Of a stretch of 64,000 bases of DNA, positions 1,245 to 36,500 are shown piece after piece. This DNA comes from Salpingoeca rosetta. Lineage: Eukaryota > Protista > Choanoflagellata. Under the pieces are notes generated by a model, which saw only the letters and a program-made list of their open reading frames with translations, was not told the DNA's origin and made no database searches. The stretch lies in the NCBI GenBank assembly GCA_033442325.1, contig JAWQFM010000014.1, positions 952,435 through 1,016,434 on the forward strand, in the 5' to 3' direction. How positions within the stretch are numbered: position 1 is the stretch's first letter; every line of letters begins with the position of its first letter. Both the position numbers and the translations under genes were made by a program.

Positions 1245-2120
1245 GCTCAACCAACCCACACACACACACGCACAACACTGCAAACACAAACAAACCAAAG
1301 TGGTGGAGTTCGCGGCTAAATGCTGGCACCCGACACGATGAAAAGTAATGAAATTTCGTAGAAGATATGTGGGAAACCCCGTTTCCGAACAAACGGTGAT
1401 TTGTGAAAGATGTCTCCTAGTTTTCTCATGCTTCCTTCCATCAAACAACCGCCGACGACAACGCAGCAACAACTCTGCATTCTCCCTGCTTGGTTTGTGT
1501 GTGAGCGTGCAGGCAACCGAACGAACAGATTCATCATCGTCGTCCATCCATCGTTCTTCTTGCCTTCTTCTTGCCTTCATTCCTCCCCCCCCCTTTGGTG
1601 TGCCTGTGTCTGTTCCATTACCACCCTCAAGGACGCGCAAGTCACCCCCACAAAGGTTTGTCGACTTGCTTCGCATGGCATTGCCTACTCTGTTGCGTTG
1701 CGCAGGTTTGTTGTTTCGGCCTTGTTGGTTTTTTTCCCGCCTATTTTTGAGTGTCGCTTTTGCTGGGTTGTGCTGGCGCGCTTACGGTCGCCAGCGCGAA
1801 TCCCCAAGCGCGACCCACCACCTCCGCATACACACAAACTTCACTTTTTTTTTTTTTTTTTGGAGAGCAAGAGGAGGAGGACGAGCAGTAGGAGGAGGAG
1901 GAGCTCCTCTTTGCAGTCTTCCTCGTGACGTGGGTGCTGTCTCTCTCTCTCTCTCTCTGTCTTCTTGTGCAAGTGTGATGCTCTCACACACATTCACACA
2001 CACGCACACACATTCACACACACACACACATTGACGACCACACACAAGACCACCGTCATTGTTGCATGCGCATGTGCGCGAGAGTCCTTGGCGGCCAGTG
2101 CAACGAAGCCGCGCGTTGGA

Positions 2121-9409
<7,289 letters not shown>

Positions 9410-14014: not shown

Positions 14015-15271
14015 TCAGCAGATGCGCTCGAGAACGAGGACGGAGGAGATGGGAGGGGAGGTCGTCGATGAACTGGGGAGGGCAAAGATGCGGCCATCGG
14101 GGGCTGCGGCCGCGCCACTCAACTCGAAGTCAGTGCTGTCAAGCGCCACAGACGTGGCGTCGGAGGAGTTGGTGTTGGTGTCAAACAAAAGGAAGTTGGA
14201 GACGCCTTCAAGGGGGATTCCATACACAAGACCATCATTGCCCGCAACGGCCGTAAACCATGCGCTGGTTTCGCCCAGGTTGTCAATATTGACGGCATCA
14301 GCATCGTTCGTCTCAGGATCGATAACAAGCACAGCATCAGCAGAAACGGGCACAGCGTACAACTTTCCATTGCCTACAAGCACAATGTCAGCCCATTTGT
14401 CGCCACTCCCAAAGCCAGTAGTTGCAATGGAGGTGGTGTCGACGGTGTTTGTGGCTGGGTCAATGATGAGCACGGATGATGCGCGTCCGGGCGCGGCATA
14501 AATTTTGCCATTGAGGGCCAGTACACCTCCAAACCACTTGTTGTCTTCAGGGGCAACCACCATGGTGGTGATATCCGCTGTTCGCGTTGCCGGGTCAATA
14601 ATGAGGACCGCGTCGGAGCGGTCGGGAATGCCGTAGATCTTGCCGTTGGGCGCGAGCACGGCGCCCTCCCACTTGTCACCACCGGTTCCTAAACCGACGA
14701 TAGAAGTCATATCGACGGTGTTTGTTGACGGGTCGATGATGAGGACTGAGTCTTCGTCCTGCGGCACACAGTAGATGAGGCCGTCAGCAGCCAGTGCCCC
14801 GCCCGCCCACTTGCGCGCTGTGTGAGGGAGTCCGGTGATGGAGGAGGTGTCTGCTGTGAGGGTGTTGACATCAATGATCAGCACGGAGGTGGACGAAGCC
14901 GGGACGCCGTAGATCTTGCCGTTGGGCGTGCACACAGCGCTCCACCAGGCAGGTGTGTCAGCCCCTTGGTAGATGTTGAGGCTGACGCTGCCCATGCTGG
15001 TTGTGTCCATGATGTGGTAGTGCGAGTGGGCGCTGCAGAATGCCCGCCAGAGCTGGCGGGTCATGCTCAGGTACTGTTTCATCTCGCTCAACTCAGCCTG
15101 CACGTCCAGGCCGTTGAGGAGCACGCGCTGTGTGGGGTTGGACGTGTTCACATGCAAGTCTCCAGCTTCATCCTGCTTGATCACGGCGGTCCCCGCGCCC
15201 CACACCAGGCCAACTGCCACACCCAAGACCAGCAGCGCCACAACCACACCAAACTCCTGCTGATGCCTCAT
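14015..15271 (-). CDS. Intronless secreted protein with a 7-bladed beta-propeller (~418 aa)
   Basis: Signal peptide MRHQQEFGVVVALLVLGVAVGLVWG; short N-domain and helix (IKQDEAGDLHVNT..LNGLDVQAELSEMKQYL); seven ~45-aa repeats of consensus W.G.VLA.NGKIY.VP....SVLIIDP.T.T.D. No introns. Confidence 0.85.
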   Translation of the reverse strand: MRHQQEFGVVVALLVLGVAVGLVWGAGTAVIKQDEAGDLHVNTSNPTQRVLLNGLDVQAELSEMKQYLSMTRQLWRAFCSAHSHYHIMDTTSMGSVSLNIYQGADTPAWWSAVCTPNGKIYGVPASSTSVLIIDVNTLTADTSSITGLPHTARKWAGGALAADGLIYCVPQDEDSVLIIDPSTNTVDMTSIVGLGTGGDKWEGAVLAPNGKIYGIPDRSDAVLIIDPATRTADITTMVVAPEDNKWFGGVLALNGKIYAAPGRASSVLIIDPATNTVDTTSIATTGFGSGDKWADIVLVGNGKLYAVPVSADAVLVIDPETNDADAVNIDNLGETSAWFTAVAGNDGLVYGIPLEGVSNFLLFDTNTNSSDATSVALDSTDFELSGAAAAPDGRIFALPSSSTTSPPISSVLVLERIC

Positions 15272-15699
15272 CCTGGTGCAGTTGGAGACTGTCTGTGGTG
15301 TGGTGAGCTGGTGAGTTGGTGAGTTGCAGCCAAGCGATCGAACATCCAATCCACGTCAGAGTGAGGTGGAATGAGCAGCGAAGAAGATTGGTTTGTTCTT
15401 TTTGTTGTGTTGTTTTGCTGTCCTCCTTCCTTCTTGGTTCTTGGGTCTTGCTGACGTCAGCAAAATCACGTGAGTCAGTTCCACCACTGGCACTGACAGC
15501 CACCCCTCTTGTCCGCAAACTTCTGCGGCTTCTTTGCTTTGTTTTGATTTGTTTGCTTCTTCTTGTGCGACTTCTTGTGCTCACTTTTCCCAGCACACTC
15601 TCGCAGACACAACCTCACACCCAATACACACACACACACGCACACATACATCCAATACACACACAGACACACACCTACACACCCCACCCAAGCACGAGC
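15272..15699. promoter_or_regulatory. Putative bidirectional promoter between the beta-propeller and ZNFX1-like genes
   Basis: 428 bp between divergent ATGs; contains CACGTG overlapping TGAGTCA (~15467-15478; E-box and AP-1-like) and TGACGTCA (~15452; CRE-like). Confidence 0.4.
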
Positions 15700-18600
15700 A
15701 TGTCGTTTCGTCAACGTGGTGGTGGTGGTGATGGCAGCCGCCCTGGCTCTGCACAACATCACCCACGAGGACGCGGGCGTGGTCGTGGTGGCAGCCGCGG
15801 TGGTCGTGGTGGCGAGCGTGGTCGAGGTGGTGGTCGTGGTCGTGGCCGTGGCGGTAGTGGGCGCCGGAACAGGCGCGAAGACGACCCCAGGCGCCGCTAC
15901 TTTGATGCCATCAAGAAAAAAGACGGAAGCGCCACGATCAAGAGCCACCGCGACTGCGAGAGGTTCCTGGAGAACGTGAGAGAGCACAACGACCGCATCC
16001 ACCTGATGTATTCCCTGGAGTCCACAGACATGCTCAACCGCCTCACGCTCTTCCTTGGACCAACCAACAACGTCAACGCGTACCTTCGCCAGTACCTCAT
16101 CCCGGCGCTGGAGATCTTTGCCGAGGGCGACTGCGACCTGCCCTCCATGCAAAACCAGCGCGACACCATCTTCCTGGCCCTCATGGAAGCACCAAACCTC
16201 TTCCCGCACTTCACCAAATACCTCAAGCTTGGCGCTGCGCCAGACACCCACGTCTCCTTCCTGGGCTGGTTCCTCACCGAGCTCGCCGGTGCCGCCCGCC
16301 GCAACAACAAGCGCGACGAGATCCTCGAGCGCCAGGACCTCAAGGACCTTGTGGATACCCTCTGCGCCAGAGAAGTTCCGTTTGCAGAGGTGCTGCGCGG
16401 GCACCTGGCCACCAACGGCAACGGCAACGGCAACGGCAACAACGCCCTGCCCCCAGACCAGCTGCACCTCGCCGCCTTCGACCCGGACTCTGACGCCCTC
16501 GTGCCCTTCCGCGACATCAGCGTCACCCCAACTGTCAACGATATTGGCCAAGCACCGCCAGCGCACCTGCCCCGCCCGCCCTTCACCGACAGCCTGGAGG
16601 CCGTGCTCAACGGCCAGTTCCGACTCCTGCGCGAGGCGCTGCTTGGGCCCATTCGCGAACGGCTACAGGACGCCGCTGTCACCAGGGCCAGCGGCAAGGA
16701 GGCGTTCCGCACCCTGTTCAAGGTTGGTCCCGTTGGCGCCAACGCCAAGTACGGCGCAGAGATGACGTTTACCTTTGAGCTGCATCACAACCACCCGTAC
16801 CACAAGCGCAAGAAGAGCGACAAGGCAATGTTCTGGGAGCGCACGTCCCTGCTCAAGCGTGGCTCGCTGGTGCTGCTGCTGCAGAACGGCGAGCCCGCCA
16901 TGCTGGCAGAGGTGATGCAGCGCGACCCAAAGACACTGCTCAACGACCAAACCGTCGGCCTGCGCATGCTGGAGCCGGGCCATCTCGACGATGTCATCAA
17001 GCAGAGGACCACGCGCTACCACGGGTACACCATGGTCATGGTCGCGCCAAACTTCTTCGCCTTCCGCCCCATTCTGCAGCGTTTGCAGGACCTGCACCAG
17101 CTCCCCTTCAAGGAAGAGCTGCTTGGCGGCCAGCCGCCAGAGGGCGAGCGCGCACCGGAGTACTGGCGCGACGACGTGCAGGTCGAGGCAGCTGCACTGG
17201 CGGAGGAGCTCACACTCAACCCGAGCCAGCGTGAAGCGCTCATGCACGGCATGAGCAACCGCGTTGCGCTCATCCAGGGCCCGCCAGGCACAGGCAAGAC
17301 CTTTATTGGCGTGGCGCTGGCCAAGCTGCTGGTGCGCACGTGCAGACAGCGCATCCTGCTGTGCTGCTACACCAACCACGCCCTCGACCAGTTTCTGATG
17401 GAGCTCATCGAACACGTCACCAAGAACGTGGTGCGCATTGGCGGGCACTGCAAGGAGGAGGCACTGGAGCCATACCGCTTGGAGATGGGCAAGTCCGACT
17501 GGACGCGTGACCAGGCATCGCGGTACCACGAGCTCAAGGACGAGCGCACCCAACTTGAGAAGGACGTTCAACGGCTCGACAACGCACTGAAGATGAAGAT
17601 GGGCGTCAAGTGGTGGTCGACGCTGAGGCGGCACCTCGAAGACGAGCACCCAGACATGTGCACAAGCCTGTCGCTGCCTCCACATGCCGCCGAACCACTG
17701 CTGCGGCAACAGCAGCAACAGCACCGGCGGCGCAACCGACACGAGGCGGAGGGCGATGGGTTTCAGGTGGTCGGGAAAGACGGCAAGGCCGTGGGGCTCG
17801 AGTATCTCTTTGAGCGGTGGTACGAGGGCAAGGACGCAGGCGTGTTTGCCCAGTACAGGGCAGGCGACCCGCTGTGGGCGTTGTCAAAGAAGGAGCGGCG
17901 AGCCAAGTTTGGCGAGTGGGAGGAGGAGATCCGGGCCCCGCAGCGCGAGGAGTTGGCGCGCAAACTTCGACGCATCCGCACCATCACGGCCGAGATTGAC
18001 GCGCTGCGTGCGTGCGGGCAGGAGAAGAAGCTGGCCAACGCCGATGTCATTGCGTGCACGACGTGGGGCGCGGCGCAGAACGCCATGCTGCTGCAGCGCG
18101 TGCGCATGCCCGTGGTGATGGCGGAGGAGGCCGGGGAGGTGCTGGAGGCGCACATCCTGACTGCGCTCCCGCGCGACTGCAAGCACCTCATCCTCATTGG
18201 CGACCACAAGCAGCTGCGGCCCAAGGTGGACCACTACCCGCTCACCCGCGAGTCCGGCAAAGGGTTTGACCTCAACGTGTCCATGTTTGAGCGGCTGGCC
18301 GACACGCTGCCCGTGGCCAAACTCCAAGTGCAGCACCGCATGCGGCCCGAGTTTAGCCGGCTCGTGCGCGAGGTGTTCTACCCTGGCGTGCTCGGCGACC
18401 ACCACAGCGTGGAAGGGCGTGAGCACATCCGCGGCCTGCAGGGCGATTTGGTCTTCATCAACCACAAGGAGCTCGAAGCGGCGGCGCAGGCGAAGATGGT
18501 GCAGCACCAGTCGCACAGCAACCCGTACGAGGTGGGCATGGTGCGCGCCACCGTGCGCTACCTCATTCAGCAGCAGTACGACCCCAGTGAGATTGTGGTG

Positions 18601-21153
18601 CTCACGCCCTACCTTGGGCAGCTGCTTGAGCTTCGCACGGCGCTGGCCGACGTGACGCACAACGTCGGCGTGGCCATCGACGACCGCGACATTGCGGACG
18701 CGCGGCAAGCTGGCGCAGACCTCGACACCAGCGTCAGGCACGAGCACGTGCACCGGGCGGCCACAGCCGGCAAAAAGGGCGCCAAGGACAAGGCGGGCGA
18801 CGACAGGCAGCAGCAGCAGCGGAAGAACGGTGATGCTGGTGGTGGTGGTGGTGGTGGTGCTGATGATGATGGCAAGGGTAATGATGACGTTGGGGATTTG
18901 AAGAAGCAGAAGCAGGCAAAGGCGAAGGCGGTGCGTGTGGCCACGATTGACAACTACCAAGGGGAGGAGTCGAACATCATCATCCTGTCCCTGGTGCGCA
19001 GCAACAAGCAAGGCAGCATTGGCTTCCTCAAGGAGAAGGAGCGGGTCAACGTCATGCTGTCACGTGCCAAGCTGGGCATGATCATCATTGGCAACCTGGA
19101 CACCTTCTACTTCGCCAAGGCAGAAAAAGGCCGCGACATGTGGCAGAAGCTCATCGACATTGTTCCTGCGGGCTGCATCACGGCCGGCCTGCCGGTGTGC
19201 TGCCAGCAGCACGCGGAGGTGCGCAACGTGCTGCGAACGCCGCAGGATTTTGACCTGCACGCGAGGGACGGCGGGTGCGAGCGCCAGTGCGTGTCTGTGC
19301 TTGCATGCGGCCACCCGTGCCCGCTCAAGTGCCACAGCGGCAGCCACGACCACATCCGCTGCACCCACGAGGAGTTTGTCAAGTGCCACAGCGAGAAGCA
19401 CGTGCTGCAGGTGAAGTGCTACCAGCTTCGGGCAGTGGAGGAGATGCGCAAACCACTGGAGACGCAGCAGCGGCGCGTCAGCACCAGCGACACCCCTTCG
19501 TTGTACTGCTCCTTCTGTGTGCGCGAGGGAAACCTTAAGCGATCGTTGGAGCGTGCCAAGGAGCAGCGACAGAAGCAAGAGATTGACAATCGCGTCAAGA
19601 TGAAGCTCATGTACGAGGAGATTATGGTGGAGCACGAGAGGCAGCTGGCCGAGCTGGAGCAAACGCGCCACACGCGCGACTACGAAGCGGAGAGGAGGCA
19701 AAAGGAAAACGAGATGCTGGAGAGCGTGAAGCAGATACGGCGGCAGATGCAGCAAGAAACGGCCGAGGCCGAGGAGCAGCTGCTCAAGGCCACTCAGGAC
19801 ATGAACGCCAAGCTGAAGGACCTTGAGGAGCAGGCGCAGAGAAAGCGCGTGCAGCTGACAGGGGAAATGACGAAGCGCCTGCAACAGCTGCGGCAGGAGG
19901 AGGAACGGGCGCGGACAGTGGCAGACGAGCGCGCACGCGACGAGCAGCGGCGACTGCAGGAACAGCTGCGGGCAGAGCAGCAGCGCATTCGCGGGCTGGA
20001 GGCCACGCTGGCAGCGCAGGGGGAGCAGCACAGGCAGGAGGTGGAGGAGAGGCGCGCGCAGGTATTGCTCGAGGCACGGCGCAGGCAGCAGCACCTGCAG
20101 AACTTGATTCGCACCAACAGGGCCCGCACCAACGCGGAGCTGAGGCAGGTGGAGGCCGCCAAGAAGCAGTTGGCCGAGGAGGAGTTTGAGTGCTGCATCT
20201 GCTTCGACGTCAAGCAGCGAGTGGACGGCATCACGTGCAAGCGCAACCCCCATTTCATGTGTGACGAGTGCTTTGATGGGTACGTGCACAGCATCGCCAC
20301 ACACGAGGAGCGGCTGGCAAACGGCCCTGAGGTCCGCTGTCCCGGTATCGACTGCGACAGCCCCGCCTTCACCTTCCGGGAGGTGGCCCAGCACGTGGGG
20401 GAGGAGACGAGCGAGCAGCTGTTCAAGCTCATCCGAGAACTGGCAGAGAAGGACGCCAACGCTGACTCGCGGAGGCGCATTGAAGAAGAGGTGGAGCGAA
20501 GGCTGAAGCAGACGCAGCAGGAGCGCAAGAAGGAGGAAGCACGCAAGCATATTACAGGGGAGATTCTCACGCTCCGCTGTCCTCGCTGCAAGACGGCCTT
20601 TGTTGACTTTGACGGCTGCTTTGCCCTCACTTGCAACAACTGCAAGTGCGGGTTCTGTGCGTGGTGCTTGAGGGACTGCGGAACGAACGCGCACCAATGT
20701 GCTGCCAGGTGTGGCACGCGCCATGGCGGACGTGGATACCACGGCACAGAGCAGCAGTTCAACGACCACCACAGAAAGCGACGTCAGCGCCTGCTGGACG
20801 AGTACATGGCCACGCTTGAGCCCGAAGTGCGCGAAGCCGTTACAGTTGCCTGCGAGAAGGATGCGCGTGACCTTGGACTTGTCATCTCGTCCAGGCCACG
20901 ACGACGCTCGCCATCACCGCCACCGGCAGCAGCGGTGGCACGTGCAAGGGCTGATGGTGTTGGTGGCGATCGTCGTGTAGCCCAGCGCGGGCGTGATGGC
21001 TTGGCCGCACGATTGCGTCGCCAGCCGCTTGTCGGTGCACGGCGCCACGATCCCTTTGGCCTTGTGAACAACGTTCATGGTGATGACGACGACGATGATG
21101 ACGACGACGACCACGTTATTGCGCGGCAACTGGAACAGATGCAATTCTGGTGA
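15700..21153 (+). CDS. Intronless ZNFX1-like SF1 (Upf1-like) RNA helicase with NFX1-type Zn fingers, coiled coil and C-terminal RING1 + RING2(Rcat) (~1817 aa)
   Basis: RGG-rich N-terminus. Walker A GPPGTGKT (17278-17301), CYTNHALDQFL, Walker B AEEAGEVLE (18121-), LIGDHKQLRP, ATIDNYQGEES, RVNVMLSRAK. NFX1-like C..VLACGHPCPLKCH (~19280-19400). RING CCIC..C..H.MC..C..RCP..C (20191-20356). Rcat CPRC..FDGCFALTC..C..FCAWC (20578-20712). First ATG at 15700. Confidence 0.9.
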   Translation: MSFRQRGGGGDGSRPGSAQHHPRGRGRGRGGSRGGRGGERGRGGGRGRGRGGSGRRNRREDDPRRRYFDAIKKKDGSATIKSHRDCERFLENVREHNDRIHLMYSLESTDMLNRLTLFLGPTNNVNAYLRQYLIPALEIFAEGDCDLPSMQNQRDTIFLALMEAPNLFPHFTKYLKLGAAPDTHVSFLGWFLTELAGAARRNNKRDEILERQDLKDLVDTLCAREVPFAEVLRGHLATNGNGNGNGNNALPPDQLHLAAFDPDSDALVPFRDISVTPTVNDIGQAPPAHLPRPPFTDSLEAVLNGQFRLLREALLGPIRERLQDAAVTRASGKEAFRTLFKVGPVGANAKYGAEMTFTFELHHNHPYHKRKKSDKAMFWERTSLLKRGSLVLLLQNGEPAMLAEVMQRDPKTLLNDQTVGLRMLEPGHLDDVIKQRTTRYHGYTMVMVAPNFFAFRPILQRLQDLHQLPFKEELLGGQPPEGERAPEYWRDDVQVEAAALAEELTLNPSQREALMHGMSNRVALIQGPPGTGKTFIGVALAKLLVRTCRQRILLCCYTNHALDQFLMELIEHVTKNVVRIGGHCKEEALEPYRLEMGKSDWTRDQASRYHELKDERTQLEKDVQRLDNALKMKMGVKWWSTLRRHLEDEHPDMCTSLSLPPHAAEPLLRQQQQQHRRRNRHEAEGDGFQVVGKDGKAVGLEYLFERWYEGKDAGVFAQYRAGDPLWALSKKERRAKFGEWEEEIRAPQREELARKLRRIRTITAEIDALRACGQEKKLANADVIACTTWGAAQNAMLLQRVRMPVVMAEEAGEVLEAHILTALPRDCKHLILIGDHKQLRPKVDHYPLTRESGKGFDLNVSMFERLADTLPVAKLQVQHRMRPEFSRLVREVFYPGVLGDHHSVEGREHIRGLQGDLVFINHKELEAAAQAKMVQHQSHSNPYEVGMVRATVRYLIQQQYDPSEIVVLTPYLGQLLELRTALADVTHNVGVAIDDRDIADARQAGADLDTSVRHEHVHRAATAGKKGAKDKAGDDRQQQQRKNGDAGGGGGGGADDDGKGNDDVGDLKKQKQAKAKAVRVATIDNYQGEESNIIILSLVRSNKQGSIGFLKEKERVNVMLSRAKLGMIIIGNLDTFYFAKAEKGRDMWQKLIDIVPAGCITAGLPVCCQQHAEVRNVLRTPQDFDLHARDGGCERQCVSVLACGHPCPLKCHSGSHDHIRCTHEEFVKCHSEKHVLQVKCYQLRAVEEMRKPLETQQRRVSTSDTPSLYCSFCVREGNLKRSLERAKEQRQKQEIDNRVKMKLMYEEIMVEHERQLAELEQTRHTRDYEAERRQKENEMLESVKQIRRQMQQETAEAEEQLLKATQDMNAKLKDLEEQAQRKRVQLTGEMTKRLQQLRQEEERARTVADERARDEQRRLQEQLRAEQQRIRGLEATLAAQGEQHRQEVEERRAQVLLEARRRQQHLQNLIRTNRARTNAELRQVEAAKKQLAEEEFECCICFDVKQRVDGITCKRNPHFMCDECFDGYVHSIATHEERLANGPEVRCPGIDCDSPAFTFREVAQHVGEETSEQLFKLIRELAEKDANADSRRRIEEEVERRLKQTQQERKKEEARKHITGEILTLRCPRCKTAFVDFDGCFALTCNNCKCGFCAWCLRDCGTNAHQCAARCGTRHGGRGYHGTEQQFNDHHRKRRQRLLDEYMATLEPEVREAVTVACEKDARDLGLVISSRPRRRSPSPPPAAAVARARADGVGGDRRVAQRGRDGLAARLRRQPLVGARRHDPFGLVNNVHGDDDDDDDDDDHVIARQLEQMQFW

Positions 21154-22132: not shown

Positions 22133-23391
22133 TCATTGTTCCGCTGCGTCGGGCTTGTCTGCATCTGGTGCGTCGCCATCAGCACCGTCGTCATCGTCAT
22201 CACCGTCCTGTCCATCCTCATCCTCATCCTCCTCCTCCTCCTCGTCACTCGACCACGACTCCTCCACGCAGTCGCGCACTTTGCGCTCGTACTCTCTCCT
22301 GTTCTCCCGATACAGCTGTGCCGCCTCCGCATTTGCCGGGCTGTTTGGGTTTGGTTCGTCCAGCAGCGATTGGATGGACGTCAGGATACCCGTGATATTG
22401 TACGTCGGGCTCCACTTGTTCTGCAGAATGTCGAGGCATATCGACCCATCCTTGTACACTGCACAAGTGTGTGTGTGTGTGTGTGAGTGTGAGTGTGTGT
22501 GTGTGAGTGCGTGCGTGTGTGTGAGAGAGTGTGTGTGTGAATGTGAGAGAGACAGTGTGTGTGTGTGTGTGGAATGCCAGCGTTGTGATGAAAGCAAGCA
22601 TCCACTCAAAATTGCGCGAGAAGGGAGCGCATGCGCACTGCGTGTGTACAGACGATACGCCCTGCTGCTGGCCTCACCGTTGGGGTGGTAGACGCGGGAA
22701 ACAAACTTGACGACAGGCGCCTTGTTTGGGTAATCCTCTGTAAATGTGAGCGTCAACTTGAATGCGCCATCCTCGAACGGTGTTCCTTCAGGTCTGAGGT
22801 ACGAAGACAGGACGAAGGCGTGAGATCGTGCAAGTGCGCGTCTGTTCAAGAACACTGGTTTGGTGCCTGCGCGTCGTGCTGGTGTGTGCCTGTGTACTTG
22901 TGTCTCATTCAGGCACACACACACTCACACATTCACACTCATTCACGCACACATACTTGTCTCATTCACGCACACATTCACACACACACATTCACACCCG
23001 CGCGCGCACGCGTTAGCGTACCCGAAGATGACGGCGTGCCAGGTCATGATATCATTCTCCACGGGAGCACCCATGATGCCCTGGATTCCCACACCACACC
23101 AACAAAAAATGCGTCAGTTGAGAAGTGCCACGGTGTGATAATGATCACCTTTGTATGCACGTGCATGTACGTATGAACGTGTGCGAGTGTGTGTATGTGT
23201 GTGTGTATGTTTGTATGTATGTGTGTGCAGGTGTTGAACGCTGGGCGGCAGCAGTTGCAGGTCAGGCGCATTCAGAGCAGCCCGTCTGCAGTGTGGTGTT
23301 GTGTCAAGGGGTATACCTGAGGTGGATCCTCCTGCAGGCGCTTGAAGTCTTTCATGAGGCGCTTGCGCGCGGGTGTGATGGAAGAGGACAT
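22133..23391 (-). CDS. RAD6: Ubiquitin-conjugating enzyme E2 Rad6/UBE2A with acidic tail
   Basis: Four exons: [25 protein letters not shown]|[20 protein letters not shown]|[17 protein letters not shown]|[33 protein letters not shown], followed by a D/E-rich tail. Confidence 0.95.
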
Positions 23392-33593: not shown

Positions 33594-36500
33594 CTACTCT
33601 TCCTTGTCAGCCTTGACTTGGTCGCTCTGGTTGCCACTCTCAGCAGCAGCATCAGCCCCCTGCTCTTCAGCAGCTGCGTCGCCGTCAGTCGAGGCATCGC
33701 CACTCTCCTCTTCCTGCTTCTTGTCCTCCTCCTGTGCCTCTTCCTGCTCCTTCTCCTGCTCCTTCTCCTGCTCATCTGCCGCGGGCTCGGCCTGCTCGTC
33801 CTCGTCACCAGCAGCTGCCTCCTCCTCCTCCTGCTGCTCATTCGTCTCCTCCTCCTCCTTCGCGGGCTCCTCCGCCTCTTCCTCCGCGGTCGTGTCATCA
33901 CCACCAGCCATCTCCTCGCTTGCCTCAGTCTCGGCAGGCTCCTCCTCTTGCGGCTTCTCTTCAGTCTCCTCAGCCGGCTTATTCTCCTTCTGCGCCGCCG
34001 CCTCCTGAGCCTCTGGTTCAGCTGCCTCATCCTCCTTCTCTGCCTCTGCCGTTTCCGCAGCGGGCTCTTCGCTCTCGCCCTCTGGCTGCTGCTCTGGCGC
34101 ATCCTCGCCTGCATTCTCCTCTGCATCAGCAGGGCTGCTGTCATCCTCCGTCTGCTTCTCTTCCTCCTCTGCGGCGGGCTCGTCGACTGCCTCTTCTGCC
34201 TCCTCTTCCTCGGACGGCTTCTGGTCTTCTTGCTCCTCATCTTCCGCGGCATCTTCAGCCTTCTCCTCAGGCTCAGCCTCCGTCTTCTCTTCCTCCTCAG
34301 CAACAGCATCGGCTGGCGCCCCTTCCTCCTTGTCCTCCTCCTCCCCGGCTGCATCCTCGTCCTTCTTCTCCGCTTCCTCGGTCACTGCTTCGACCTCATC
34401 CGGCTTGTCGCTGTCGGCGCCGTCAGCAGGGGCAGCGGCCTCTGCCTGCTCCCCCTCCTGCTGCTGTTCCTCATCCGCAGCAAGTGTTTCCTCGCCCGCC
34501 TCCTCGTTCTTGTCTTCCGTCGTCTCCTGTTCCTCGCCCTCAGGCTCCGCTGCCTCTGGTTCTGCCTCTGCCTCCTCTTCTTCCTTCTCCCCCTTCTCCT
34601 CTTCAGCGTCTGCTGCCTCATCCACATTGTCTTCCTCTTCTCCAGCTGTGGTCTCCTTCTCCTCCGCCTCACCCTCTTCGGTTGCCTCCTCATTCTTCTC
34701 TTCTTCTTCCACTTGCTCTTCTTCTTCCACTTGCTCTTGCTGCTCTTCATTGCCGCTGCTCTCGCCACTCTCGATGTCGTCCTCCTTCTCTTTGAGCAGC
34801 TTGATGCCCTTGTACAGCGCGCAGATGATCTCCGCCTCCGTGATGCAGAAGCGCGCGCGTGGCGAGATGTCGCACACACCGCCCTCGCCAATCGGCGTGT
34901 GTTCTCCACCAATCCCGCGCACACTCAGCCCAAGCGGCTTGCACACCTCCTTCGCCTTGGCATCTGTCCCGTCAGCCGTCAGCTTCGGAAGCCCAATGTG
35001 CACGCTCGCGCGCATCCCCGTGCCCAGGTTCGTCGGGCAGCTCGTCACAACGCCGTAGTCTGGCGACATGGCAAACGACAGGCCCTCAATCCCGCTCACA
35101 ACATCAAGCGCCGTCTTGAGCCGGTCAAACACGTCGTTCAGCACCGTGCCCTTCTTCATGCACATGATGCGCAGGTGGTCCTCCTCGCCAACCCAGATCA
35201 CAAACCCGCGGTCCTCAGACACGTAGCACCCGCGCCCGTACGGCCAGTCAGACGCAATGCCCGCGCTCGCCAGGTACGGGTCTGCCGCCATGTCCTTGAA
35301 CATGATGTGGTCCGCCACCAGCTGCTTGTACTCCTCGTCGCTGATCTTGTCCGGGTGCCCGGGCGTCAGCGAGTTGTACCCGCCCCCGTACTCGGGCATT
35401 GCCTTGAGCTTCTCAAACGCCTCGCACATCTGTGTGCCATGTGTGCCATGTGCGTGCGATGTGAGTGATGTGTGAGCGAGCGAGGAAGAGAGTGGGGTGT
35501 GTGCGATGTGAGTGATGTGTGAGCGAGCGAGGAAGAGAGTGGGGTGGGGGCGAGGTGAGGCAGTGAGGGCTCACGCATCAGGGTATGAACGCACACGCAT
35601 ACACATGCACACACACATGCACACACACACACACACACCTTCTTCTCGAGGCTGACGCGGTCCTCCTGCGTCATGGCGCCTGGCAGTGGGAAGTCAGCAA
35701 GGTTGCGTCCAACGCGCACGCGCATGCTCAGGGCTGGCAGCCCAAGTGCCGCAAGGTCCAGCTTGCCGCCCTCAGGAAGGCCCTCAACCCCAGACAGGTC
35801 CCAGCTGTTCACGTGCTTGGCATCCTCGGCAACGCCGTGGTAGTCCGCAATCACCTTGCTGAAGAACGGCTTGAACCGGTCGTAGTCCGCGGGCTGCATG
35901 GCGTCTGTGTCGTGCCGTTGTGCACGTGCGAATGTGTGTGTGTGTGTGTGTGTGCGTGTGCATATGTGTGTGTATGTGCATGTGCGTGTGTGAATGCGTG
36001 TGTACGTGTGTGTGAATGCGCGCGCGTGTGTGTGAGCGAGTATGTAAAGGAAAGAACGCATGAACACGTAGGCGAGAGAGAGAATGTGTGTGTGTGTGTT
36101 TGTGTGTTTGTGTGTGTTGAGGCATACGCAACACCAACCGAGCAACATCACGGCCAACGCAAGCCCAAAACACGCAGCAGCAAAATAACAAAGCATGGCT
36201 GCGCGCGCACGGTGTTGTCGCATCTACTCACAGCAGCCCATGGAGGAGTCTGGGTTCTCCAGACCGCTGCGGCAGCACTGCACCAGACCGCGCTGTTGGT
36301 CCTTGTCGAGTTCCATAAAGTACGCAATGTCAAAGTGCTTGGCCATGCGGTTCTCAGGGTTGGACTCGCGAATCTGGTTGATCTTCAGGTTGACGTTGTA
36401 AGCGTGGAGAAACGCCGGCTGCTCGTCCTGCTTGTCGGCAGCATCCTCGCCCTTGGGCTGCTCTTCCCCTGAGGCGGTGGCGGTGGCGGGCGCCGTCTGC

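Follow-up and report, generated by a model that had tools for sequence, protein, structure and literature searches.

A 64,000-nucleotide stretch of the genome of the choanoflagellate Salpingoeca rosetta (contig JAWQFM010000014.1 of assembly GCA_033442325.1, positions 952,435 to 1,016,434; hereafter the window, from whose first letter all coordinates are counted) carries an intronless, expressed gene at 15700..21153 on the forward strand. Its 1817-amino-acid (aa) product, P0001, joins a predicted RNA helicase of the ZNFX1 family to a C-terminal module apparently built from parts of RBR ubiquitin ligases (E3s). Judging from sequence comparison, structural models and the analogy with human ZNFX1, we consider it fairly probable that P0001 is a helicase-gated transthiolating E3. 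An original prediction, made from the letters of the window, had proposed much the same enzyme as an independent invention. However, the idea of a helicase coupled to an E3 is no longer new, as RNA-stimulated E3 activity by an 'RBR-like' route has already been demonstrated for human ZNFX1. Because this mechanism has been published, P0001 is not categorically new, and is better read as the swap of an effector module within a family known to be E3s.

The reading frame runs without interruption from the ATG at 15700 to the stop codon at 21151-21153, and an identical protein was called on scaffold GL832966.1 of assembly GCA_000188695.1. Stranded RNA sequencing (RNA-seq; 2026) covers the open reading frame (ORF) end to end at a depth of 20-400 in two runs. 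The reads have the orientation of a forward-strand mRNA and contain no splice joints across 15700..21153. RNA depth is 0 across 15450-15648 and rises from 15649, while a transcriptome contig from run X5 begins at 15683, which places the transcript start at ~15649-15683 and the 5′ untranslated region (UTR) at 15649..15699. The ATG at 15700 is the first one downstream of the transcript start, with none upstream of it within the transcript, and the in-frame extension of the ORF back to 15316 lies outside the transcribed region. Because the RNA-seq signal is continuous, splice joints are missing and no ATG precedes 15700, the gene model, with its complete coding sequence at 15700..21153, is real, expressed and intronless. 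A CA-rich (ACACAC) low-complexity tract at 15590-15690 lies directly upstream of and inside the 5′ UTR. Read depth over the gene in run X23 was ~40-fold below that in X21 and X22, which come from the same study and have a similar read number (values are unnormalised), and this difference may reflect condition- or cell-type-dependent expression.

The SF1 Upf1-like helicase core (aa 503-1135; 17206..19104) matches the Pfam families AAA_11 (7e-31) and AAA_12 (4e-42). Its nearest solved structure is that of human ZNFX1 (9q9z; 4.4e-85), Upf1/NAM7 reaching only ~1e-34, so that by sequence the helicase is of the ZNFX1 type, closer to ZNFX1 than to other SF1 helicases. Motifs Walker A, Ia, II, III, V and VI are all intact (GPPGTGKT, TNHALDQFL, EEAGEVLE, GDHKQLRP, DNYQGEE and MLSRAK), the first three being located at aa 527 (17278-17301), 558 and 809, respectively. 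Ahead of the core, a disordered RGG/RG-rich N-terminus (aa 1-65; 15700..15894), with Arg and Gly making up 64% of aa 1-70, is followed by a ZNFX1-like region (aa 70-440; 15907..17019), which is also found in P0174, P0166 and P0003 and gives a weak match, below cutoff, to the Pfam ZNFX1 domain (PF25396; aa 371-435, E value 0.002-0.003). Behind the core lie a short, putative NFX1-type zinc-finger stretch (aa 1164-1262; 19189..19485) and a segment of ~230 aa (aa 1265-1495; 19492..20184) that consists to 72% of E/K/R/Q/L/A and to 2% of P and G, a composition that fits a long helical or coiled-coil stalk. A low-complexity insert of Gly, Asp, Lys and Gln is present inside RecA2 (aa ~1000-1075; 18700-18920). 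Human ZNFX1 contains a regulatory insertion that occludes its RNA groove.

The original prediction had named the intact ORF, the ZNFX1-type SF1 helicase with its motifs TNHALDQFL and EEAGEVLE, the RGG N-terminus and a ~230-aa coiled coil, all of which agree with these data. Its NFX1-type zinc fingers fared less well: the stretch, 19% of which is Cys and His, aligns collinearly with the first NFX1-type fingers of human ZNFX1 (residues 1347-1426), and one CGHxCxxxCH finger is visible. However, the match is weak (E 0.044), a Pfam search of the stretch returned nothing and the fingers are few, with one or two visible.

The last 330 aa are, on sequence and modelled fold, RBR-derived, comprising an RBR-type RING1 and an Rcat-like domain with a Cys in the catalytic position. 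RING1 (20191..20355) starts with the motif CCICFD at aa 1498 and has a complete set of C3HC4 ligands (C1498, C1501, C1513, H1518, C1521, C1524, C1547 and C1552), the eight of which are kept in 92-100% of ~170-195 relatives. Its closing ligand pair takes the RBR-typical 'CPxxxC' form and, as in the RING1 domains of RBR ligases, no Arg/Lys linchpin follows the last Cys. Position 1500, between the first two Cys, is where the ubiquitin-conjugating enzyme (E2) would be contacted; it is Ile here and I/V in 144 of 169 relatives. No zf-RZ match (PF20173) was obtained at E≤1, and no single-zinc Z-RING/Miz domain was detected, the equivalent position being occupied, by ligand count alone, by the eight-ligand C3HC4 RING.

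Because the 74 residues between C1552 and C1627 contain neither Cys nor His, an IBR is absent between the two zinc domains, and a single helix of 56 residues (aa 1568-1623; 20401..20568; residues 89-144 of the AlphaFold2 module) is predicted in its place. The Rcat-like two-zinc domain that follows (aa 1627-1671; 20578..20712) shows a pattern that fits an Rcat, with one Cys that probably binds no zinc placed between zinc ligands two and three. This residue, Cys1640 (20617..20619; within DGCFA at aa 1638), occupies the catalytic position, nine residues past the second ligand and four ahead of the third, and is Cys in 232 of 236 relatives (98%), even where C1650 or C1660 has been lost. In the same 236 relatives, C1627, C1630, C1645, C1648, C1653, C1656, C1671, and H1665 and/or H/C1667 are conserved at 97-100%; once the eight zinc ligands are set aside, what remains conserved is C1640 plus one spare His or His/Cys (1665 or 1667). 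Position 1642, which holds the His of the C-x-H motif in RBR ligases, is Ala in 229 of the 236 relatives and His in none. The RING1 and Rcat with a catalytic-position Cys, the missing IBR and the GCFA replacing GCNH had all been read from P0001 alone; the original prediction was right in these main structural features, which recur in a family.

Searches of the C-terminal ~330 aa by sequence, profile, language model and fold all lead to RBR ligases. With the single sequence, phmmer retrieved the Rcat of CUL9 (7.7e-4), with parkin, HHARI and HOIP Rcat matching as well, and the alignment to CUL9 Rcat is gap-free from CPxC through FCxxC, with the same C-x2-C-x9-C-x4-C spacing. A 49-sequence profile matched the RING1 and the Rcat of parkin as two distinct domains and reached CUL9 with 5.8e-4, Pfam IBR_1 was matched, below threshold, by 15 of the 49 profile members, and the language-model neighbours of the module are RBR, IBR and Rcat_RNF216 clusters. 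AlphaFold2 predicts, in this order, a RING-like domain, the 56-residue helix, a small zinc domain and a helical hairpin (predicted local distance difference test score, pLDDT, 77); the zinc domain and hairpin folded with the 49-sequence alignment reached a pLDDT of 92.8. The hairpin (aa 1684-1724; 20749..20871; helices 68-88 and 92-108 of model mc86db91c3385) is family-specific and conserved in alignments A2 and A3. When the whole module was compared with the PDB by Foldseek, nearly all 50 listed matches were RBR ligases, HOIL-1/E2-Ub being the best (1.7e-4), followed by RNF216, HOIP, parkin, HHARI and ARIH2. The RING part matched the RING1 of RNF144A (1wim; template modelling score, TM, 0.71) and of HOIP (TM 0.62-0.66), and the best 50 matches of the Rcat-like model were all Rcat or IBR domains (HOIP, parkin, HHARI, RNF216 and HOIL-1), parkin Rcat-Ub and HHARI catalytic domains among them, with a root-mean-square deviation of 1.3-1.7 Å over 35-37 residues and 30-36% identity.

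One other assignment of the second zinc domain, that of an ordinary cross-brace RING, was considered and rejected. It was suggested by the 49-sequence profile, which scored 2e-5 against RNF4 summed over a tandem construct and ~0.05 per domain. As such a RING, however, the domain would leave the invariant C1640 and C1645 without a role, and the fold matches of the high-confidence model are all Rcat or IBR and none RNF4-like.

At its very end, P0001 carries a disordered Pro/Arg-rich stretch, then ten Asp and then DHVIARQLEQMQFW, with HVIARQLEQM starting at aa 1805; the poly-Asp run and the helix together (DDDHVIARQLEQM) occupy 21082..21150. We take this tail to match the motif interacting with ubiquitin (MIU) of Rabex-5 and RNF168, in which an acidic run and a hydrophobic-x-[LIVM]-A-x-x-L-[QE]-x-acidic pattern lie on one helix. 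The MIU-like terminus of the original prediction is present as a pattern, and at least 14 relatives, including six helicase fusions, likewise have a D/E-x-x-[LM]-A-x-x-L-[QE]-x-E-E tail behind the module, with DEELAMRLQEE, DFLLAQQLEQEE and DEQLALALQ as examples. Such recurrence supports a function for this putative ubiquitin-binding motif. In the MIUs of RNF168, the central Ala is essential (PMC2699339).

Far from being a one-off, as independent construction would imply, the module belongs to a large family. Its profile, searched against 1.84 billion representative proteins, retrieved 4133 clusters (50% identity) at E≤1e-3 and 950 at the stricter E≤1e-30, with nearly all matches spanning the module end-to-end, and RING1-helix-Rcat is, on this sequence evidence, a large conserved protist cassette uncaptured by Pfam and found in repeated fusions with SF1 helicases, kinases, CCCH fingers and PARP. 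The named taxa that carry it include Spongospora, Telonema, Euglena, Ochromonas, Symbiodinium, Chromera, Balamuthia, Creolimax, Rhodomonas and S. rosetta, the last of which encodes at least one paralogue of the module, a CCCH-plus-module protein (P0128, PTSG_09987). The whole architecture, including the last 250-270 aa, recurs in four distant full-length homologues, P0002-P0004 from environmental assemblies and P0008 from Spongospora subterranea, and the nearest relative of P0001 is 33% identical to it. About 15 of the best 150 module representatives carry a ZNFX1-like helicase, and helicase-plus-module proteins, at least 15 of them, occur in Spongospora, Telonema, Ochromonas and metagenomes.

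Among 17 long proteins with the module, 13 contain an SF1 helicase, three a kinase and one a DEAH helicase together with an IBR (P0364). P0356 combines an N-terminal CCCH finger, an SF1 helicase and the IBR-less module, P0354 an SF1 helicase, the module and a C-terminal stretch that resembles PARP weakly and below the Pfam cutoff, and P0359 from Chromera velia a protein kinase and the IBR-less module; in other long members tested, a protein kinase directly precedes the module in seven of eight. Short members show CCCH, PARP, RWD, UBA and RanBP combinations. In a quick FastTree phylogeny of the helicase (130 rows), the RBR-like fusions are mixed with RZ-, PARP- and AAA+-bearing relatives in a non-fungal grade of poor resolution, a topology that neither forces nor excludes a single origin of the helicase-module fusion. 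The sequences do clearly indicate that the C-terminal effector has been exchanged within this helicase family (RZ, AAA+, PARP and RBR-like). A viral origin was considered and rejected, as no relative was found in IMG/VR viral contigs. Our literature searches returned no description of an IBR-less RING1-Rcat or RBR-like cassette, nor of ZNFX1 relatives in choanoflagellates.

The closest functional precedent is the antiviral human ZNFX1, which three recent papers (10.1101/2025.09.05.674436; 10.1101/2025.10.14.682297; PMC13710534) show to be an interferon-induced, RNA-stimulated E3. Its E2, UBE2D, is bound by a RING-like domain with a single zinc (Z-RING or Miz) that had escaped annotation, and ubiquitin is transferred either directly or via Cys1860 of the RZ finger, the second route having been termed 'RBR-like'; the activity of ZNFX1 is raised by ubiquitin chains (10.1101/2025.09.05.674436; 10.1101/2025.10.14.682297). 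Squair et al. noted that no SF1 helicase had previously been described in combination with an E3, and a passage in PMC13710534 refers to an RNA-ubiquitinating activity of ZNFX1. P0001 resembles human ZNFX1, to whose structure (9q9z) its SF1 helicase is closest, in the collinear N-terminal region, in a collinear but weak match to the first NFX1 fingers and in the order of helicase, stalk and two-part E3, with a RING-like domain and a catalytic-Cys domain predicted to bind the E2 and to carry the active site. Unlike human ZNFX1, it has neither an RZ finger nor a detectable Z-RING/Miz, and instead features a two-zinc C3HC4 RING1 and a domain of Rcat fold, while its finger stalk is much shorter, a helical segment of ~230 aa has been added, and both the RGG N-terminus and the MIU-like tail are further differences. 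By sequence, P0001 is thus a ZNFX1-family helicase and not a ZNFX1 orthologue in its effector, because the RZ and Z-RING are missing.

RBR ligases (HHARI/Ariadne, ARIH2, CUL9, parkin, HOIP, HOIL-1, RNF216 and RNF144) are the best fold and sequence matches of the module and share with it the RING1 closing ligand pair, the Rcat Cys spacing and the catalytic-position Cys. In contrast to them, P0001 has the 56-aa helix for the IBR, Ala for the C-x-H His, the hairpin and the extra conserved His/Cys (1665 and 1667), and the sequence similarity stays below Pfam thresholds. Because the IBR and the C-x-H His are missing, P0001 falls outside the canonical RBR ligases, yet, going by sequence and models, it probably works like one. 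An RNA helicase N-terminal to an RBR-type ligase is also found in the plant and fungal 'helicase' RBR subfamily, where a DEAH-box helicase precedes RING1-IBR-Rcat. Whereas these classical proteins, exemplified by P0364 with its Pfam IBR, combine an SF2 DEAH helicase with a canonical IBR, P0001 has an SF1 ZNFX1-type helicase and no IBR. As in RNF213 and MYCBP2, which are non-HECT, non-RBR transthiolating E3s, a RING or RING-like E2 dock is predicted to feed a separate small zinc domain with the catalytic Cys, and in RNF213 a nucleotide-binding ATPase regulates the E3; the catalytic domains, however, are unrelated (an RZ finger and a tandem-Cys domain), with no homology detected.

Expression, domain identity, fold class, conservation and the recurrence of the architecture are established directly, and from them we infer a mechanism with E2 docking, a thioester, RNA dependence, substrates and a possible role in defence. 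The RGG tail and the helicase would bind RNA in an ATP-dependent manner, and the zinc-finger and coiled-coil stalk may dimerize the protein or position the E3 module. RING1, with no linchpin Arg after its last Cys, would dock a charged E2 via Ile1500, and Cys1640 would accept ubiquitin in a thioester and hand it on to a substrate, for which P0001 itself, RNA-bound proteins or RNA (as reported for ZNFX1) are candidates. Binding of ubiquitin by the MIU-like tail could provide feed-forward or allosteric activation, the job of the RING1-IBR region in canonical RBR ligases. Because the C-x-H His is Ala family-wide, an alternative base (the invariant H1665, or H/C1667) or another acceptor chemistry seems likely. 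Given the analogy with human ZNFX1 and the partners of the cassette (CCCH, PARP, kinases and other SF1 helicases), the role of P0001 is most plausibly in RNA surveillance or defence.

Several points weigh against a helicase-gated transthiolating E3. The E3 activity of P0001 is a prediction from comparison and models, and its immune or RNA-triggered role is one drawn only from analogy and fusion partners; moreover, we know of no S. rosetta virus. In known RBR ligases, the IBR, absent here, helps to bind donor and allosteric ubiquitin, and P0001 has Ala where HOIP, parkin and HHARI carry the His that brings the final transfer step to completion. Scores for small zinc domains are each weak alone: Foldseek with the Rcat-like domain gave an E value of only ~0.2, which is expected for some 40 residues, and VIA-align against 48,161 chains returned Z scores of at most 4.3, with RNF216 and parkin among the top rows, within noise. 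Finally, the Rcat-like domain has ten conserved residues, and C1650 and C1660 are mostly Cys too, so that C1640 might serve structurally in a third zinc site, a possibility weakened by the lower conservation of C1650 (78%) and C1660 (91%) and by the persistence of C1640 without them.

An improbable alternative is a RING-only E3, in which RING1 would activate the E2 directly while the second zinc domain, without catalytic function, would act as an IBR-like binder of ubiquitin, RNA or protein, with Cys1640 structural or regulatory. IBR and Rcat share one fold, the Pfam matches are to IBR families and to no Rcat-specific model, the catalytic His is missing, the extra conserved Cys/His could build the third zinc site, and human ZNFX1 keeps a RING-like one-step activity even without its catalytic Cys (10.1101/2025.09.05.674436; 10.1101/2025.10.14.682297). 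Nevertheless, the Cys spacing equals that of CUL9 Rcat without a gap, C1640 outlasts both potential third-site partners, and RING1 lacks the linchpin Arg/Lys, just as RBR RING1 domains do. A change of chemistry within the transthiolating scheme, and thus compatible with it, would be the use of another ubiquitin-like modifier or of a non-protein acceptor (RNA, or sugar or lipid hydroxyls) by a His-less active site. The family-wide loss of the C-x-H His alongside the new invariant His1665 and H/C1667 speaks for it, as do the ubiquitination of RNA by ZNFX1 reported in a passage of PMC13710534 and the non-Lys ubiquitylation performed by HOIL-1 and ARIH1 (PMC10657180). We nevertheless regard it as quite improbable, since the sequence specifies neither modifier nor acceptor and the MIU-like tail points to ubiquitin itself. 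A further alternative concerns the role and not the mechanism: the same chemistry might serve housekeeping, such as small-RNA or transposon silencing, RNA granules or mRNA quality control, as with C. elegans ZNFX-1. Expression at a depth of 20-400 in two runs without known challenge, the non-immune RNA roles of ZNFX1 relatives (C. elegans ZNFX1 is discussed in 10.1101/2025.10.14.682297) and the RGG tail, typical of granule proteins, make this possible, if rather unlikely. Because the distribution is patchy and divergence fast (33% identity to the closest relative), the C-terminal effectors have been swapped across the helicase family, the other partners of the cassette are CCCH fingers, PARP and kinases, and one run shows ~40-fold less expression than others from its study (unnormalised), a conflict system fits better than housekeeping.

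The genes around the helicase gene were also inspected. Its upstream neighbour (14015-15271, reverse strand), arranged head-to-head, is intronless and encodes a 418-aa Tachylectin/Kelch-like beta-propeller (Pfam Tachylectin 6e-06, below cutoff); the two genes have a promoter region of ~430 bp in common, and co-regulation of a lectin-like protein with the adjoining putative defence E3 could follow from this arrangement. Downstream, at 22133-23391 on the reverse strand, an intron-containing gene encodes a RAD6/UBE2A-type E2. We rejected it as a dedicated partner, since it is a RAD6/UBE2A orthologue (3e-48 to human UBE2A) with a housekeeping function, and the adjacency is probably due to chance. 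ORFs with an ATP:guanido phosphotransferase domain (33594-35429, reverse strand; 3e-53) and a bromodomain (1965-4307, forward strand; 1e-15) are ordinary eukaryotic genes, consistent with a region of a nuclear chromosome.

ZNFX1 was recognized as an RNA-stimulated E3 only in 2025-26, and P0001 appears to present the same helicase chassis with a different transthiolation module, made of RBR parts, a combination found in a choanoflagellate and in distant protists alike. The pairing of one sensor with exchangeable effectors (RZ, AAA+, PARP and RBR-like) follows the usual pattern of immune gene families, and the comparison has exposed an IBR-less RBR-like family of more than 4000 clusters that Pfam does not capture. 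We tentatively raise the further possibility, unlikely as it may seem at present, that the cassette, which lacks both an IBR and the C-x-H His and has an invariant His1665 and H/C1667, represents a distinct, undescribed class of transthiolating E3 that serves protists as a plug-in effector behind RNA helicases, CCCH proteins, PARPs and kinases. RNA-triggered ubiquitination would then have been solved a second time, and independently, in the ZNFX1 lineage, perhaps with RNA or other non-protein acceptors. The family would offer a natural test of the parts that the IBR and the catalytic His play in RBR catalysis, and of whether helicase-gated ubiquitination predates animals. S. rosetta is a genetically editable, tractable relative of animals, and these questions are therefore directly testable in it.

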